Origin: Thalia democratica
Taxonomy: Eukaryota
NCBI GenBank assembly: GCA_965202585.1
Contig: OZ241833.1
Coordinates: forward strand, 12,772,001-12,836,000
Length of the DNA: 64,000 nucleotides
Reading direction: 5' to 3'
Below are positions 4,984-62,532 of this stretch, one piece after another. Position 1 is the stretch's first letter; every line of letters starts with the position of its first letter. Below the pieces are notes generated by a model. The model was not told the DNA's origin. It was given only the letters and a program-made list of their open reading frames with translations, and ran no database searches. A program made the translations under genes and the position numbers.

Positions 4984-7129
4984 ATTAGAGACCATGAGTG
5001 GCCTGAACTTTAGGAATTTTCTAATAGGAATCAGGTGCCTTATCAATTAAAAAACGCAGCGGAAAAAAAAACTTTAGTTTATTACTAAACAAATTTTTAA
5101 CAAGTTTAAAATTTTGACAGTATAATTTGCGATAATACTTTACTTTGCGACATTTTAATATGATTATAGTAAGAAAAATTGTGTGAAAAACTTTGTACTT
5201 TGAAACAGCAAGTCTACAATTATAATGTAGTCCTCCAGGGCCTGAGGTAGGAACTACCTTTAATTGGGGGAAGTCCCCTTTTTTGTGGTAAACTCTTAAC
5301 GCGTTTAGCTCTTAAGGTTTTTACTGAATTTACCTTACTCATTAGGTTTAACTTAGTAATTATTAAATATGTAATAAGCTTAATATATATAATTTCTTTA
5401 ATGAAGTGAGTTTATTGAAAACGTGATGTTAATGTGAAAATTAGGAAGTAGAAATAATAAAGCAGCTAATTTATCAGTAGAACAAAACTGCGAATATAAA
5501 CACAACAAGTAAACACCAAACTCTACAAACTAAAATGTCTTAATAATGTTTTTAAAGTGTCTTAATGACACAATCTTAAGCACAAAATAGGTCTTACTAA
5601 AAATACTACTAATAATACAGAGTCTTAATATATGTCGTGCTTCATGCACAACGATGGCTAAACTAAGCACAATATAATAAGATCATGCAAATAAGCTTCA
5701 AGATCTTATAAAACAAAAATAATATAACAGTTCTTATAATGAGTTCGTGTGCATCTCGCACGGTCTTATGGCTTAATTGAGTACATTACAATACAGTTAT
5801 ACAAATAAAGATAAAGTTCTTATAAAATGACAATCATATCAAAGTTCTTAAATTCAATCAGTGTCTTAAGTTCTTAAAATTAGTGTGCTTTTTGCACGAT
5901 CTTATGGCTAACTGAGCCAAAAACAAAATAACGAACAACATATCGAGCTGCGCGTAGTGCGCAAGCTAGGGCCTAATGAGCAATTTCTTATCGTTATCTT
6001 GAAATAAGTACATAATTTCGGCTGACTATAGCGCCAACTGGCGGAAAAGTATAAAATAACGAAATCGAAAATGGAATTCGTTACAATAATACAAGTGTGT
6101 AGTAGTGGTTTATTGAGTTTTATTAAAAGAGAAGCTAGATGTCAGGGATGTTTTGCTTAAAATACTATATGATTTTTGCGGTTATTTCTACTTATCCTTT
6201 TGTATATTCTTTTTAGTGCTTAGGTGCACAGTTTATTTGCTAACGAGCACAATATTTCTTTTTCTAAGTGCACAATATATGTTGCAACTAACATAAGTCG
6301 CATGGGGGCGCAGTATTTCGATCATAAAAAGCACAGTCTTTTTACTCAATTGCACAATGTTCTTTTGAACATGTTGCAATTTACATAAGTCGTCAGGGGA
6401 CGCAGTATTTTAGTGCAAAATTGCATTTTATAAGTTGCCAAGAGAGCGCATTTATAATATTTTTCTAAGCATAGAAACGTAAAATAATAACCGCATTAAA
6501 TTTACAACAGCAGAATAGTTGTTCTCAGTAACGTCTGAGTTTTAGCTGATAAAACAAATTTTTCTATGTGTTTACTACTACTAGTTTATAGTTTTGATCT
6601 GCTGATTGATTGTTCTAAAGTTTAGATTTTATTTGTTTTAAACCAGAATGTTGCTGAAATTCAAAAATATGTTTGAATGATGTTTCATCTTTATTAGTCG
6701 TAAAATGGCATTTCATATACCACATTTTATTACTCGTTTCAAGTTCAAGTATACAATTTTGTTAAAGTTTTCCCTTTGAAAGAAATATATGCAAGGATTA
6801 TTTCCTTTGAAAGAAATCAAAAATAAACTCCCCTTAAATTTAGCAGTCGTCGCTTGTTAAATAAATTGTTGCGTTTGTATCTTTTTGAACGTTGTTTAAA
6901 GCAAATGTTTGATTGTCGTTTAAGCACAGCTTTTAAGCACACCTAACTACTGCATACAACTTTAAAAGTTTTTTTTGTTTTTAAGTACCACAATAGACAA
7001 GAGAAATAATCAAGATTTTGTGTTTATATTATGACGTCACAATCAAAAATTCCTGCTGTCATTATTTCCAAAGCCAATCAATGTGGTGTTTGCTGATTCT
7101 ACAAACCAGCTAGAAGACAGAAAGTCAAA

Positions 7130-7230
7130 AAAGATAAAGAAGCCCGAGGACAGGAAGCCTGAAGACAGGAAGCCCGAGGACAAGAAGCCCGAGGAAAAAA
7201 GCCCGAGGACAAGAAGCCGGAAGACAGCTA
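7130..7230 (+). repeat. 15-bp tandem repeat (AAGCCCGAGGACA(A/G)G)n
   Basis: About six units; they translate as EARGQ or KPED(R/K) repeats depending on frame. Confidence 0.8.
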
Positions 7231-8586: not shown

Positions 8587-10819
8587 AGATGTAACGTTAA
8601 AAGGCGTTAAATCTGGGGAGATCCTGATAATCTAAGCTTATCGGAATATATACCACATATGTTCTTGTGTTCAAACTTCATTTCAACTAACAGCATTTCA
8701 CTGCTCTCAAATAAATTTAAGAACAGATCTACGGAGTCTATAAAATATTAACACACATTAGAAAACAAGCAGAAAAAGCATGTATAATTATGTATAGTGT
8801 TTATGTAGGTAGTAACTATAAATGAACTTTATGGTTTAAAAACAAAGTTTGGGATAAAGACATAAAATTATAAAATTGTCTACAAAAAATACAAATTTAA
8901 TAAAAGTAGGCACTAACCTCAAAAAGCTCTAAGAATAGGCAAGTTTTTAAAATGAAAATTAAATTGAGTTGTGCAGAAATGTTACGTCATAATAAATTTA
9001 ACAAATTGGTCAATAATTTATACAGCTTAAAATCATGAAGTATTAAACTTGCAAGTGTTTTCGATTGTAATGTGAGTGTTGTGAAATAAATTAGTACATA
9101 AGTAGACAGAGTTATTTAAAGTAGAATCGTCGGTTGTGGGGACAAATATTCGATAAATCTTGCCGTTTATTCAGAAGTAGGTCTTTATCTTCTGCTGCAA
9201 TTACTGCTCTTTCTGTATTGCAAGTTGGGCAAATTCTACCTACTCCGTTGGATGCATGTTTGATCTTTGAAACAACACTCCACTCCATGTTTGGCCTTAT
9301 ACCGTACCTGTGAAAGAAGCTCCAGACATAATCTGATAAACGCGTGCTTTGTTTTTTACTTATATTTTTAAAAGTATGTTTATGGTTAGAATATCTATTC
9401 TTGAAACTACCTGCTGTACTATTGATATAAATTTCATCTGGGCCCTTACTTTCAAATTCAAATTTATAAATTCCATTTTTAATTAAACAATTACCTTATA
9501 ATGGGCAGTTATTTTTATTTATTTTACGGAAATTACATGTTTTAGGCATATTACTTACTTATTACTATTAGGGTTAGTTGGTTTTGAATATTTATTTGTA
9601 GTTTTATTGTTATGCATTTTGCTTATACTTTTAGCGCTATTATTTATTACTTGTTCTAAGTTTTCTTTTATCATTTTAGAAATACTTCTAGTTATACGTT
9701 GATTATTATAATCTACACTATTATTAGTATTATTGATGTGGATATTTACATTGGCATTAATATTAAAGTTATCATTACAGCTTATATCTTTAATGTTTAA
9801 AGTTTTAATATGTTTTACATTATTGTTATCATAATTTAAATTTTTACTATTAGGATTATCATTATTATTACTGTTATTATTACTATTATTTTTATTATTA
9901 CTGTTATTTATAATATGATTAGTATAATTAGAAATACTGTACATATCTGCGTTATTACTAACTTTATTACTAGCACTATTATTTGTATTAGCTTTGATAT
10001 GTCTATTTTTAAAGTTTGAAATTATTGTTTTGTTGTGCGATTGAATTAAAGTTTTAACATTACTCATGCAACTATAAGAAATTTTAACAGTCTTTCTATT
10101 AAAAATTTTATTATAAAAGTGGCTATCGGGGAAGTGTTTATTGACTAGCTTTAAAAATTCTTTACCTAAGTTTATACTAACTGAATAGCAATATGGAGGA
10201 TTATACCACATTATATGTCGGTTACGCGTTTTTTTTGCGTTTTTTATCTACATCTAATTTTTCATACTTTAATTTAAATTTAATACCTCAGTTTTTTAAT
10301 TCATTTTCGTACGGTGCTTTTATTTCGTTAAATATCTTTTCATTCGAAGAGAGGGTACTTAAACGTTTTTGTGTCATTACCGGGAGGCATTTTTTTAAAT
10401 GATAAGGGTGGTCAGAATTAATATTAATAAAGTTTAATAAAGAATTCGGTTTACGGTACGGACGGTAAGTATTATTAGATAAATTTAAAGTAACATCTAA
10501 AAAATTCGTTATTTGCGCTCCTATTTCTATAGTTATTTTAAAACCGATATCAGACATCAATCTAAACATTGACTTTTTAATCTTTTCGTAAACAAGAGGC
10601 TTTTCGTAAATGCCTACTTTTATTAAATTTGTATTTTTGTAGACAATTTTATAATTTTATGTTTTTATCCCAAACTTTGTTTTTAAACCATAAAGTTCAT
10701 TTATAGTTACTACCTACATAAACACTATACATAATTATACATGCTTTTTATGCTTTTTTTCTAATGGAGCAGTGAAATGCCGTTAGTTGAAATAAAGTTT
10801 TAACACAAGAACATCTGTG
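8587..10819 (-). mobile_element. 5'-truncated Penelope-like element (RT C-terminus, linker, GIY-YIG) with inverted pseudo-LTR, flanked by (TA)n
   Basis: RT thumb NFLDVTLNL...YRKPN...HP (10288-10569); WYNPPY...KISYSCMSN (9555-10211); CPL*GNCLIKNGIYK...YINSTAGSFKNRYSNHK...ICPTCNTEK...CPH to stop at 9112. Inverted arms 8654-8912 and 10611-10819. (TA)n at 8571-8586 and 10820-10840. One frameshift and one stop. Confidence 0.9.
8685..8738 (-). ncRNA. Degenerate minimal hammerhead ribozyme in the PLE pseudo-LTR
   Basis: GACT-CCGTAGA-T-CTGTTCTTAAAT/ATTTGAGAGCAG-T-GAAA-TGCTGT-T-AGTT. Stems I and II form, but the CUGANGA core is mutated. Confidence 0.5.
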
Positions 10820-58617: not shown

Positions 58618-59495
58618 ATTTACAAATACTAATTGTTTTCAGTATCTAAAAGTTAATACTCGACTACTAAGTACAAATTATTTACAATCGAACTTTCTTT
58701 CAGTATTACTTTGGTAGTTAATTTTTAATTAAATTTACGACTATACCTCAAAAGACTTTGTATAAACAAAGTCTGTTTGAAATGTAAATAAGTTTAACTT
58801 TGTTAGCTTAGTTTAACCTCTAACAAGTTTTAAAGTAAAAAACTATATAAAAAAAATTTGTAAAAAGTTTTTTATCTAACACAAATATGAAATAAAAAGA
58901 AGATTAATGATTATTATACATGAGAAACTTTTTGAGTAAAAATAAGTAGCACAATAATGTAATAAAGTTGTTATGACAAGTTGTAACCTTTTTAGATTGT
59001 TTGTTTTTCTTTAGAAAATTTTTGTTATGCTTTACTCTAACTTGGTTTGGAGGTTATTGTTAGCAATATAAAAAAAAATTTAAACAATAATTACTAATAA
59101 TTAGACAACTTAAAGTTTTATTTAATTTTTATCTGAAACGATTTACTATTATATATTTATGTTAAATAGATACACAATGCGTTCTAATTTTATATAGTCA
59201 AACTATTTACTTTAAACAAATTAAAAAGCAATAACTTAAATTATTAGCAAGCGAAATAAAACATTAGACACTAGTAAATTTATTGAAATTGACAAATTAA
59301 AACAAGTTTTAGTTAATACGCCACGATATGAAATTTTGCAAAATTTTAAGAATTCGCTAAATAAAATTCATTTTGTATTGATTTAGTTGCAAGTAGCCCC
59401 GAAACATTTGGCAGCAAAATCGAAAATAGTGGTTTTTATCTTAATATGTGATTACAAATTTAAACAGTACTCTTTTTTTTATTATACTAAACATG

Positions 59496-61453
59496 CACAG
59501 TGGGCTGAAAACGGGGATCAAGCGGCCATCAACATAAAACTGTCATAAGAAGCACTATAATACAATTTAAAGTTGCACTTAGTGTTACAATCAGAATAAT
59601 GTTTGTTTTTATTAAAAATAGTATAAATTTTAATTTTTAATGAAACTTTAAAGAAAGAAACTTAGAAAAAAAGAAAATTATAATTGGCTACCTCAAGAGA
59701 GTCACATTTACTTCCATTTTAGTTTAAATATGAATGAATTTTCAATATCAAGCCGGGTGAAACTATACTCTAAATACAATTTATTTTTAACTTAATGATG
59801 ATCTTTGTATATCAAAGTTTGTATTATTAATAACGTTACATTTGTACTAGTTTATCAAAAGAAAAAAAACCGTAAACATTTTGAACAATAAAAACATTTA
59901 TTTGTTGCAAAACAGTGCAAAAAACAAAATAATTTAGCCTGTGATTAAAAAAAAGCACTTTAAAGTTACTAGAAAACATAATTCAAACAGTAAGTTCTTA
60001 AAACTTCTTTGAAATTAAGTTTCTCAAATAAATAAAACATTCTATTCAGTAGCACAAAGCATATGTAAAACGTTTCCAATTCTGATATACATGATGAAAT
60101 TTTTTCATTTAGCTGCAAACAACTTCGCGCAGTATGTCCGACTTTTTTACAATAAGTGCAATTCAGTCTGTCTAAAGTGTTGTTAACATCGTAGTCACTC
60201 TTGTCCCATAATCGATTTAAACAGTCTGTTAAATTTTCATACTGAGAAGTTTTCCTTGAAAAGTTCATTCTGTACTGTCTTAGAAACTTGTTGTTAGCTT
60301 CCAATCCACTTTCGGTGTAATTTAGCAAACCTCTACCGTTGTTTTGCTCAATTAGTTCAGCACTATGTGCAAGAACAGTATGCGCATTTGGAGTAAAGCG
60401 AATCCATTTAACCGACATGACCAGCATCATTGTTTTTTGAAATAAAACTGAGTATTTCTCTAAATTAATCTTTCTGTTAGAATTTATAGGCCATAAAATA
60501 ATGGAAACATACAAAATAATTTTGTTAATGTTTTCTTTTAAACTAACATCAGAAATATGTTCGTCAGCAGAGTCCTATTATTGGTGTTTGGCAAAGTTTT
60601 GACTGCGTTACCTGTTGTAGAAGTTCCACCATGGCCTGTGGGATACGGTTTTTCAAGAAAACCTTTAATTAGCTAAAATAGTTTAAAAAAAACTATTTCA
60701 ATAACTAAAACATATACTAAGCTACCATGTTTTGACCAATACTAACTGTTCTCATGATCTGTAAACAAAAGTAAGTGAATCTATACACATTAAGAACCTT
60801 CTATAAGATACAAAATGGTCTTTTTTGTCACAGTGAAAAACCAGGGATAGAATATTATATCAATTTTTTTAACAGAAATATCGCTTGTAAAAACCTAAAA
60901 AAATAGTTATATTCCACATGATAGATTTGTCTGTAAATTTGTATATAGATTCCTTGTCATTTTTACTAAATTATTAAAAGAGAAATTATGTTGGTTCTAC
61001 AGTGGCGAATTGAGAAAATTAACCCTGAAGAACACCCTAAATTGCCAGAAATTATCAATAAATTTTCGGCAAGAATAGAAGATTTTAAAATTAGAAATAA
61101 TATACTTTTACATTTAAATATTCAAAGAATTTTGACTTTTTGCAATTAACATTAAACCAAAGTAATGAAAAAACTTAAAAAAAAGTATTTGTATAAAAGC
61201 TTATAAGGTGTTTTTTAAGAGTAGATGTAGACCTTAATTTTGAAAAAAATTTAAGCATTTTTCGAGGCTTTTTTAAACTTAAAAAAGCAAACTTTGGCTA
61301 CATTTAAGCTTACATAACTTTTAGTATACTTTAAGCAGCAGAAACAAACCCAGTTTTTAAAAGACGAAACCCCTCTCTAAACAATTAAATAACAATCTTG
61401 CTATAACTGTTTAGTCGCGAAAATAGTCAATGGCCACTTGCCAGCCCACTGTG
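59496..61453 (-). mobile_element. Internally deleted Transib / RAG1-like DNA transposon
   Basis: 12-bp perfect TIR CACAGTGGGCTG; perfect 5-bp TSD ACATG (59491-59495, 61454-61458); minus-strand transposase remnant. Confidence 0.92.
59969..60760 (-). pseudogene. C-terminal fragment of Transib/RAG1-like transposase
   Basis: PTGHGGTSTTGNA; TPNAHTVLAHSAELIE (cf. RAG1 HKTLAHVPEIIE); YTESGLEANNKFLRQYRMNFSRKTS (cf. RAG1 [22 protein letters not shown]); tail CTYCKKVGHTARSC. Confidence 0.85.
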
Positions 61454-61779
61454 ACATGTTTCCGTGTGATAACAAGTTTACATACTTCAACGGAGCTCTA
61501 TAAAAAATAAATACTGTAAGAAAATAATAGAAACTAAAGTAGGTGTATATATGTGTTTATTAAAAATAAGAATAAGTTCTATAGATTATTGTAGATTAAT
61601 GGTTAATAATAAATAAAATATAAAATGTTAAATCCAACTGTTATAAAACTATAAAATATTAGTAATTATTAAATTTAAATTATGATTAAGTAAAGTAAAA
61701 TACAAAATAAAATAACAGGTCTAAATATAACGTACTCATATAAAAGTAGTTGTAAAAATATTGATTCATAAGACTAAAC

Positions 61780-61890
61780 CAGGGGTCGGTAAACTGCGGC
61801 CCGCGAGCACGTTTTTTTCTTTAAATGGAACGCGGCCCGCGAAAGAAAATTATGCGGCTCGCGAGTGTGTAAATGTGGCCCGCTAAACTA
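61780..61890 (+). mobile_element. hAT MITE left end
   Basis: CAGGGGTCGGTAAACTGCGGCCCGCG plus repeated GCGGCCCGCG motifs; matching right end not identified. Confidence 0.65.
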
Positions 61891-62532
61891 ATATATTTAA
61901 AAAAAATATTTTTCGGTTATTTAGATTAATTTGATTAATTTCGTTTTAAGTACCTGTATAACATTTTAAAACAATAAAACGACTTTACTGATTTGGCTTA
62001 AAAATGTGAAAAAGACAGATTAGCATTCGAGCAGTGTTTTTTTCTCAGTTTCATAAAAACTTTCTTCTTAAAATAGCAATTTCTGATCTGAAAAAAGAGT
62101 GTTAAAAAAAACTTGCCTCCGTAAGTTATTTATATAATACCTATTTAGTAAATATACTAGTTTCAAATGTTTTCCATTGTGTACAAAAATTATGCACAGT
62201 AATTAACTAAATTGTCATTTCTTTACAGTTTAGTTATTTTGTTTAACATTTAATTTATACGTAAGTTTCTCTTATAGATACTTTATCACTATGTGTTATT
62301 TTTGAGTGTACATAAAAACATTTTAAATAACATAATGATAAGAAATAAGGTCTGTTTTGGTTTTGACACATTTCAATTGCTTTAAAAGTTTTCTGTACAC
62401 TTTAAATTAATTCCTATGCACACCAATGTACAAATATGCTCATTTTTAAACCACTTTTTTATTTAATACTTAGATAAAGTGTAGTTTAAGCATAGTAGTC
62501 TATTGTAATTGTTTCTACATATAATATCTAAG

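Follow-up and report, generated by a model that had tools for sequence, protein, structure and literature searches.

In a 64-kb window of Thalia democratica DNA (64,000 nucleotides of contig OZ241833.1; positions given without a contig refer to this window), we analyzed a 1958-bp transposable element that occupies positions 59496-61453 and is flanked on either side by a perfect 5-bp duplication, ACATG, as read directly. The element is confirmed as a non-autonomous, internally deleted copy of a Transib transposon, of the RAG1L-like type with a CCGHC tail. Each of its terminal inverted repeats (TIRs) consists of a terminal block and an inner block, and the two repeats are unequal, with the distance between the blocks differing by 10 bp, about one helical turn. 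The same difference is found in related families with diverged transposases, a comparison that argues for functional constraint on the ends.

The element shows the traits of the Transib superfamily, namely a target site duplication (TSD) of 5 bp, TIRs that start with a CAC heptamer and a RAG1-core-like DDE transposase. The transposase is represented by one open frame (see Table 1 for E-values), which matches the C-terminal part of HzTransib (PDB 6pqn residues 350-466), amphioxus RAG1L (BbRAG1L) and the final part of the Pfam RAG1 model (positions 556-617). The frame encodes the third catalytic residue, E, in TESGLEANNK (codon 60299-60301), as well as a C-x2-C-x3-G-H-x4-C zinc knuckle (CCGHC; CTYCKKVGHTARSC, encoded at 60119-60160). 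The frame spans what is the entire last exon in full-length relatives, with 52% identity over 165 amino acids to exon 2 of L006, a marine metagenome relative. When the element was searched by tblastn with the first exon of the relatives, which carries the two catalytic aspartates, no trace of that exon was found. As only the last exon is left and the first is gone, the element is an internally deleted, non-autonomous Transib. Moreover, as the exon lies on the minus strand, the right end of the element, with a 1-nt spacer, is its 5' end, and the left end, with an 11-nt spacer, is its 3' end. The element would have been inserted by cut-and-paste with duplication of 5 bp of target, and would have been decaying since.

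The full-length relatives, when compared by sequence, match HzTransib (E 2e-22) and BbRAG1L (E 1e-13), while the closest named match outside the clade is a protein of the ctenophore Mnemiopsis leidyi, with 36% identity. The tail motif, CTT1, is also present in L006 and in L011, a relative from a sea louse, and a variant of it, C-x2-C-x4-H-x4-C, without the G, is found in another relative, L014. From the tail motif and the Mnemiopsis match, we infer that the element belongs to Subgroup I of the Transibs as defined by Tao et al. 2022. No RAG2-like gene was found inside the autonomous relatives, with L014 containing a single long open reading frame (ORF), and L006 and L011 containing only the transposase exons among the calls.

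The termini of the two ends, CACAGTGGGCTG, are identical at 12 of 12 positions, and a search for this motif returned two matches in the 64-kb window, both being the ends of the element. The inner blocks are identical at 12 of 15 positions and likewise give two matches in the window, both within the element. The spacer between terminus and inner block measures 11 nt at the left end and 1 nt at the right end, and the two ends are thus offset by 10 bp. This length difference corresponds to 10 of the 11 nt of AAAACGGGGAT (59508-59518), in place of which the 5' end has a single G. The initial annotation of this stretch had described a Transib/RAG-like transposon with CACAGTG followed by GGCTG at both ends, a perfect ACATG duplication and a second shared block (12/15) that follows after 11 nt on the left and after 1 nt on the right. 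The directly read termini, flanks and coordinates, together with the RAG1-core-like exon, bear out this description.

Table 1. Features of the Transib element and its flanks in the 64-kb window. End positions (nt) are numbered with the heptamer's first C as nt 1, and 5' and 3' refer to the orientation of the transposase.
Feature	Position	Strand	Basis or remark
TSD, left copy, ACATG	59491..59495	.	Identical to 61454-61458
3' TIR terminus: heptamer CACAGTG (59496-59502) + GGCTG	59496..59507	+	Direct reading, motif search
3'-end-specific segment AAAACGGGGAT	59508..59518	+	Direct reading
3' TIR inner block CAAGCGGCCATCAAC, nt 24-38 of the end	59519..59533	+	Direct reading, motif search
Last transposase exon, remnant	59969..60562	-	HzTransib E 1.1e-6, BbRAG1L E 9.7e-6, Pfam RAG1
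Non-coding 5' part of the deleted element	60563..61425	-	Aligned to other ~2-kb family copies; no tblastn match
5' TIR inner block, reverse complement CAAGTGGCCATTGAC, nt 14-28 of the end	61426..61440	-	Direct reading, motif search
5' TIR single-nucleotide spacer	61441..61441	-	Also single in L005 and L001
5' TIR terminus: heptamer (61447-61453) + GGCTG	61442..61453	-	Direct reading, motif search
TSD, right copy, ACATG	61454..61458	.	Read directly

Judged from the window copy alone, the inner block is only moderately beyond chance, as a best 15-mer match of 12/15 has a probability of ~0.08 when random AT-rich pieces of the window are used as reference, and of 0.008 when shuffles are used. The window copy, however, presents C and A at positions 59530 and 59531, where virtually all other copies (~37-42 contigs per run, in four public runs) present T and G, as do copies L003 and L005. 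As these two substitutions are private to the window copy, the inner blocks of the family are 14/15 identical, for which the probability is ~0.001.

The offset was then considered both within the family and across related families. Within the family, the 5' end of L005 has a 1-nt spacer and the 3' ends of L003 and L005 have an 11-nt spacer, while the differences listed among the family contigs include no insertion or deletion inside either TIR. Other families were found through their transposase protein and then through the contigs encoding it, and spacing was counted between the CACAGTGGGCT-like terminus and the CAAG block. In this count, a spacing of 2 nt at the 5' end and 12 nt at the 3' end was obtained for the autonomous marine metagenome elements L006-L010 (with exons of 533 and 183 amino acids), for L011 from the sea louse Caligus rogercresseyi (3997 bp, with a perfect TSD, CAGTA) and for L014 (3953 bp, with a perfect TSD, CCCTA, and an intact, intronless ORF of 711 amino acids). 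The fragment L012, in which only the 3' end is found, also shows 12 nt. CACAGTGGGCT is kept in all of the related families, and in a MAFFT alignment, a single 10-column gap separates all 5'-type ends from all 3'-type ends. The 10-bp offset that the initial annotation had pointed out in one copy is thus invariant in all copies and related families retrieved.

This constancy is seen over considerable divergence. The last exon of the window family shares 51-58% protein identity with those of the other families, and the last exons (exon 2) of L006 and Caligus share 79%. Both ends of a given family carry one and the same version of the inner block, which varies from family to family (GGCCAT for the window family, AGACAT for L006, and GGACAT for both Caligus and L014) around a core of CAAGYRGMMAT. 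Directly inward of the TIRs, sequences from different families cannot be aligned, while spacing within the TIRs is exact. The 3'-specific segment has the same length in five families and is partly conserved in sequence (A..A..GGG..T at fixed positions), while the corresponding 2 nt of the 5' ends vary. A 10-bp offset (0 vs 10 nt) was also found around the Mnemiopsis leidyi relative, where the inner block is quite different (L013:5316-5347 and 9177-9208). As the geometry has remained constant while the transposase diverged to ~50% and the inner block changed in step at both ends, these sequence comparisons lead us to conclude that the unequal-end geometry is under functional constraint.

Some further observations were made on the relatives. 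L014 lies at L014:3962-7914 in a 4.8-Mb ENA contig, with the transposase ORF at 5001-7136 and a 14-vs-24 end geometry, and can be regarded as a candidate active, apparently intact autonomous element. The presence of an intron differs within the clade, with one intron, between exons of 533 and 183 amino acids, in L006, L007, L008 and Caligus L011, and intronless genes of ~704-715 amino acids in L014 and several metagenome proteins. The Mnemiopsis Transib-like gene sits inside a kinesin gene, on the other strand, and this copy may be old or domesticated.

The geometry of the ends can be compared with that of V(D)J recombination signal sequences (RSSs). The nonamer occupies nt 20-28 in a 12-RSS and nt 31-39 in a 23-RSS. 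In the element, the inner block, which is 11-15 bp long, has its outer limits at nt 28 and nt 38 (Table 1), and these match a 12-spacer/22-spacer RSS arrangement. The block itself begins 6 and 16 nt after the heptamer, such that spacers of 12 and 22, to be compared with the 12+/-1 and 23+/-1 bp of RSSs, are obtained if its last 9 nt alone are taken as equivalent to the nonamer. The element and the RSSs share an identical heptamer, CACAGTG, and in both cases, one partner is longer than the other by about a helical turn. They differ in that the second element of the RSSs ends at nt 28 and 39, rather than at nt 28 and 38, and in that the RSS nonamer is A-rich (ACAAAAACC), whereas the inner block of the element (CAAGYGGCCATTGAC) contains no A run; the suggestion in the initial annotation of an inner site that is not a nonamer thus stands. 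In addition, conservation in the element extends to the bases beside the heptamer and to part of its 'spacer', and its repeats are the ends of a transposon and not the flanks of gene segments. The invariant GGCT next to the heptamer is reminiscent of the TR2 or 13-bp terminal elements of RAGL transposons.

To consider what might bind the inner block, we turned to the transposase of the full-length relatives. An AlphaFold model of an intact relative, P0067, was based on an alignment of 24 sequences and reached a mean pLDDT of 80. Residues 91-681 of the model align to mouse RAG1 393-1008 with Z ~29, with the nonamer-binding domain (NBD) falling at model residues 91-157, while the alignment starts only at model residue ~157 for all HzTransib chains and for chains that lack the NBD. 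The clade is thus predicted to have an extra three-helix domain at the position of the RAG1 NBD, as well as ~90 further N-terminal residues. When the isolated domain was folded alone (pLDDT 87), its best PDB matches were RAG1 chains and the RAG1 NBD-DNA crystal 3gna (TM 0.52-0.58, with a root-mean-square deviation of 2.8 A over 61 columns), a match that is suggestive of an NBD-like fold. The domain opens with a conserved K-R-P-L, followed by the R-rich RQQRRR.

The window copy is one of a family that is present in marine metagenome contigs as copies of ~93-96% identity (L002-L005). In two runs of the host organism(s), summed contig depth is a few hundred times as large within the element as in the unique left flank; while summed depth is not a copy number, as a rough guide it points to a family of some hundreds of copies in the host. 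The window copy still has an open frame in its last-exon remnant. Among the copies, the ratio of non-synonymous to synonymous polymorphism (pN/pS) is ~0.4-1.2 and stops are found in some, and the exon is therefore a decaying remnant. The notion that the ~2-kb element encodes a conserved truncated protein was rejected for the same reasons. The window copy is an ordinary decaying, non-autonomous insertion. Two further candidate ends came up. One, L001, was returned by a metagenome scan for the end pattern and contains a 25-nt 5'-type end with an unrelated interior and without a second end; since a pattern of this kind should match about once by chance, we consider its support as weak. The other, L015:833-865, lies in an IMG/VR viral contig and shows 11-nt spacing, with no Transib-like protein, and was judged to be a chance match (about one such match being expected).

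The surroundings of the element are AT-rich, with a G+C content of 23-33% along the window and ~27% overall. The long ORFs of the window include no conserved host gene. To the right of the element, a very high-copy repeat covers positions 61782-62250 and continues to ~62500, with a summed contig depth of 1e5-2e5, as compared to ~100 in the unique flank. The repeat starts with CAGGGGTCGGTAAACTGCGGCCCGCGAG, contains four GCGGCCCGCGA-like motifs at 61796-61885 and looks like a miniature inverted-repeat transposable element of another superfamily.

Taken as a whole, we read the locus as a decaying Transib with bipartite, unequal ends, the geometry of which is constrained, and which would be read by a transposase supplied in trans. 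We consider this reading to be likely. The transposase, provided by an autonomous relative, would bind the terminal block via its catalytic core and CCGHC tail, while the N-terminal RAG1-NBD-like domain, probably as a dimer, would bind the inner blocks. The one-turn offset would have the inner blocks of the two ends face the same side of the helix at different distances, and the paired complex would be intrinsically asymmetric, such that the 5' end could be told from the 3' end. We infer this mechanism on the basis of the established workings of RAG and BbRAGL (10.1101/2023.08.20.553239; PMC8289069).

This reading has some weak points that need to be considered. Copies of the ~2-kb family share descent, and their own agreement proves nothing. 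The argument is therefore built on five families, two of which (L006 and Caligus) are themselves rather close, with 79% identity in exon 2. The Mnemiopsis locus has its long end 5' of the gene, that is, the opposite polarity, and as this copy shows degenerate heptamers, no TSD and uncertain boundaries, it should be taken as tentative. The 3'-specific segment, being partly conserved, may itself be a binding site and not a spacer. With regard to the protein, the match of the isolated domain to the NBD is not significant in Foldseek (E ~2), and the GRPR/K motif was absent from the full-length relatives searched. Finally, no empty-site allele was found in the reads and contigs of the public runs. 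Two joints near the element, 59475 to 61480 and 59478 to 61471, were set aside as uninformative because of short sides and the wrong intervening letters, and no site with a single ACATG could be rebuilt from them.

Other explanations for the offset should be weighed against the same data. If the offset were a neutral legacy, that is, a 10-bp insertion or deletion inherited from one ancestral end and playing no role in transposition, then its presence in the compared families, all of which are related, could be explained by shared ancestry, as it certainly is for the copies of the ~2-kb family. However, the spacing is exact where the sequence inside the TIRs can no longer be aligned between families, and changes in the inner block have gone in parallel at the two ends. 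Furthermore, a 10-bp offset recurs in the ctenophore relative, which is 36% identical and has an entirely different inner block, and asymmetry is described as universal in this Transib subgroup by Tao et al. (PMC9435367). We thus regard a neutral legacy as very unlikely. The extra 10-11 bp at the 3' end could instead be a recognition or regulatory site in its own right, for instance offering a second contact to the CCGHC tail or binding a host factor, rather than acting as a spacer, and the ends would then differ in their content and not in geometry alone. The fixed A, A, GGG and T of this segment across five families, next to the variability of the equivalent 2 nt of the 5' ends, are what such a site would leave behind. 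Yet, the length of the segment is exactly conserved and amounts to about one helical turn, as phasing predicts, while an independent site need not be so constrained. Since the spacers of RSSs and of ProtoRAG are also partly conserved (PMC8289069), a role as spacer is compatible with this pattern, and we find a separate site to be rather unlikely.

A stronger claim than that of a constrained geometry would be a strict 12/23-like rule, under which cleavage by a RAG2-less Transib would be confined to a synaptic complex of one short 5' end and one long 3' end, in the manner of RAG with 12/23 RSSs. The invariance of the 10-bp offset across five families would suit such a rule, as would the outer limits (nt 28 and 38) of the inner block, which mirror RSSs with 12- and 22-nt spacers. 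The relatives also carry the predicted NBD-like domain, and in RAG, it is the NBD dimer that enforces the 12/23 rule (bioRxiv 10.1101/2023.08.20.553239). On the other hand, ProtoRAG, the only invertebrate relative with unequal ends for which this was tested, prefers but does not strictly require the asymmetric pair (PMC8289069), and its cleavage has been reported to be uncoupled (10.1101/2023.08.20.553239). A strict rule is possible, with the balance tipping towards its not being obeyed. That a RAG2-less Transib transposase, equipped with a RAG1-like NBD and a CCGHC tail, would by itself impose a one-helical-turn pairing rule, joining short 5' ends to long 3' ends and to no others, is similarly doubtful. 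If it did, the 12/23 rule would be older than both the capture of RAG2 and the A-rich nonamer, and this marine clade would be a tractable system in which to study it. Our preferred reading remains that of a decaying Transib, the constrained, unequal ends of which would be read by a transposase supplied in trans.

Unequal Transib ends have already been published, and the element described here adds a solid example to them rather than a new principle. Kapitonov and Jurka 2005 (PMC1131882) reported Transib families with RSS12-like 5' ends and RSS23-like 3' ends, namely Transib5 of D. melanogaster and Transib2_AG and TransibN1-N3_AG of A. gambiae, and concluded that the 12/23 rule is derivable from Transib ends, and Yakovenko et al. 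(PMC8355894) restated the RSS12/RSS23-like character of Transib ends. The present element shares with those families the 5-bp TSD, the CAC-heptamer termini and bipartite ends that differ by about one turn, as well as the polarity, with a short 5' end and a long 3' end. It differs from them in the second block, which is an A-rich, nonamer-like sequence in those families and a CAAGYGGCCATTGAC-like sequence without an A run here, in the offset, which is 11 bp in those families and 10 bp here, and in the host, as those families are from insects and the present element is from an AT-rich marine animal with relatives in a copepod.

Further parallels are found in Subgroup I and in the RAGL transposons. 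According to Tao et al. 2022 (PMC9435367), all Subgroup I Transibs, which carry the CTT1/CCGHC tail, have asymmetric TIRs, and the subgroup includes Mnemiopsis and Hydra Transib-9 representatives. The element and this subgroup have in common the CCGHC-type tail and the asymmetric TIRs, with an NBD-equivalent region predicted in the relatives of the element, although identity to the Mnemiopsis protein is only ~36%. The study also describes the ends of AanRAGL as a 13-bp element, a spacer of 4 or 13 bp and a 10-bp element. The first two parts of this layout, the 13-bp element and its short or long spacer, are very closely matched by the present ends, in which a terminus of 11/12 bp is followed by 2/12 nt. 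Martin et al. (10.1101/2023.08.20.553239) reported a 10-bp length asymmetry for PflRAGL-A and considered asymmetric TIRs, the CCGHC tail and the NBD as ancestral, being already present in Transibs, and ProtoRAG was found to prefer an asymmetric pair of 5' and 3' ends (PMC8289069). The RAGL transposons (ProtoRAG, with 27/31, AanRAGL and PflRAGL-A) and the present element thus have the same organization of a terminal element, a fixed unequal spacer and a second element, and the RAG1L proteins of the former also carry the CCGHC tail. They differ in that RAGL transposons carry a RAG2-like gene, convergent with RAG1L, whereas the autonomous relatives considered here contain a single transposase gene between their TIRs and no second long ORF. 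HzTransib of Helicoverpa zea (PDB 6pqn), the Transib for which biochemistry and structures are available, shares the homologous catalytic core, the 5-bp TSD and the heptamer terminus with the element. Its TIRs are described as symmetric and without a nonamer-like element in one source (PMC8289069), and its tail is given as another type in a second (PMC9435367), while the HzTransib chains are without the N-terminal ~156 residues of the present clade, including the NBD-like domain.

How the 12/23 rule arose is an open question on the path from transposon to V(D)J recombinase. To the systems above, the present work adds a marine clade that is well sampled and in which the offset is exactly conserved, with an inner block that is not A-rich and candidate active autonomous copies. 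The clade unites an exact one-turn offset, kept over ~50% protein divergence, with a predicted NBD-like domain, a CCGHC tail and apparently intact autonomous members that show perfect target duplications. With this combination of features, end pairing becomes directly testable in a RAG2-less enzyme.

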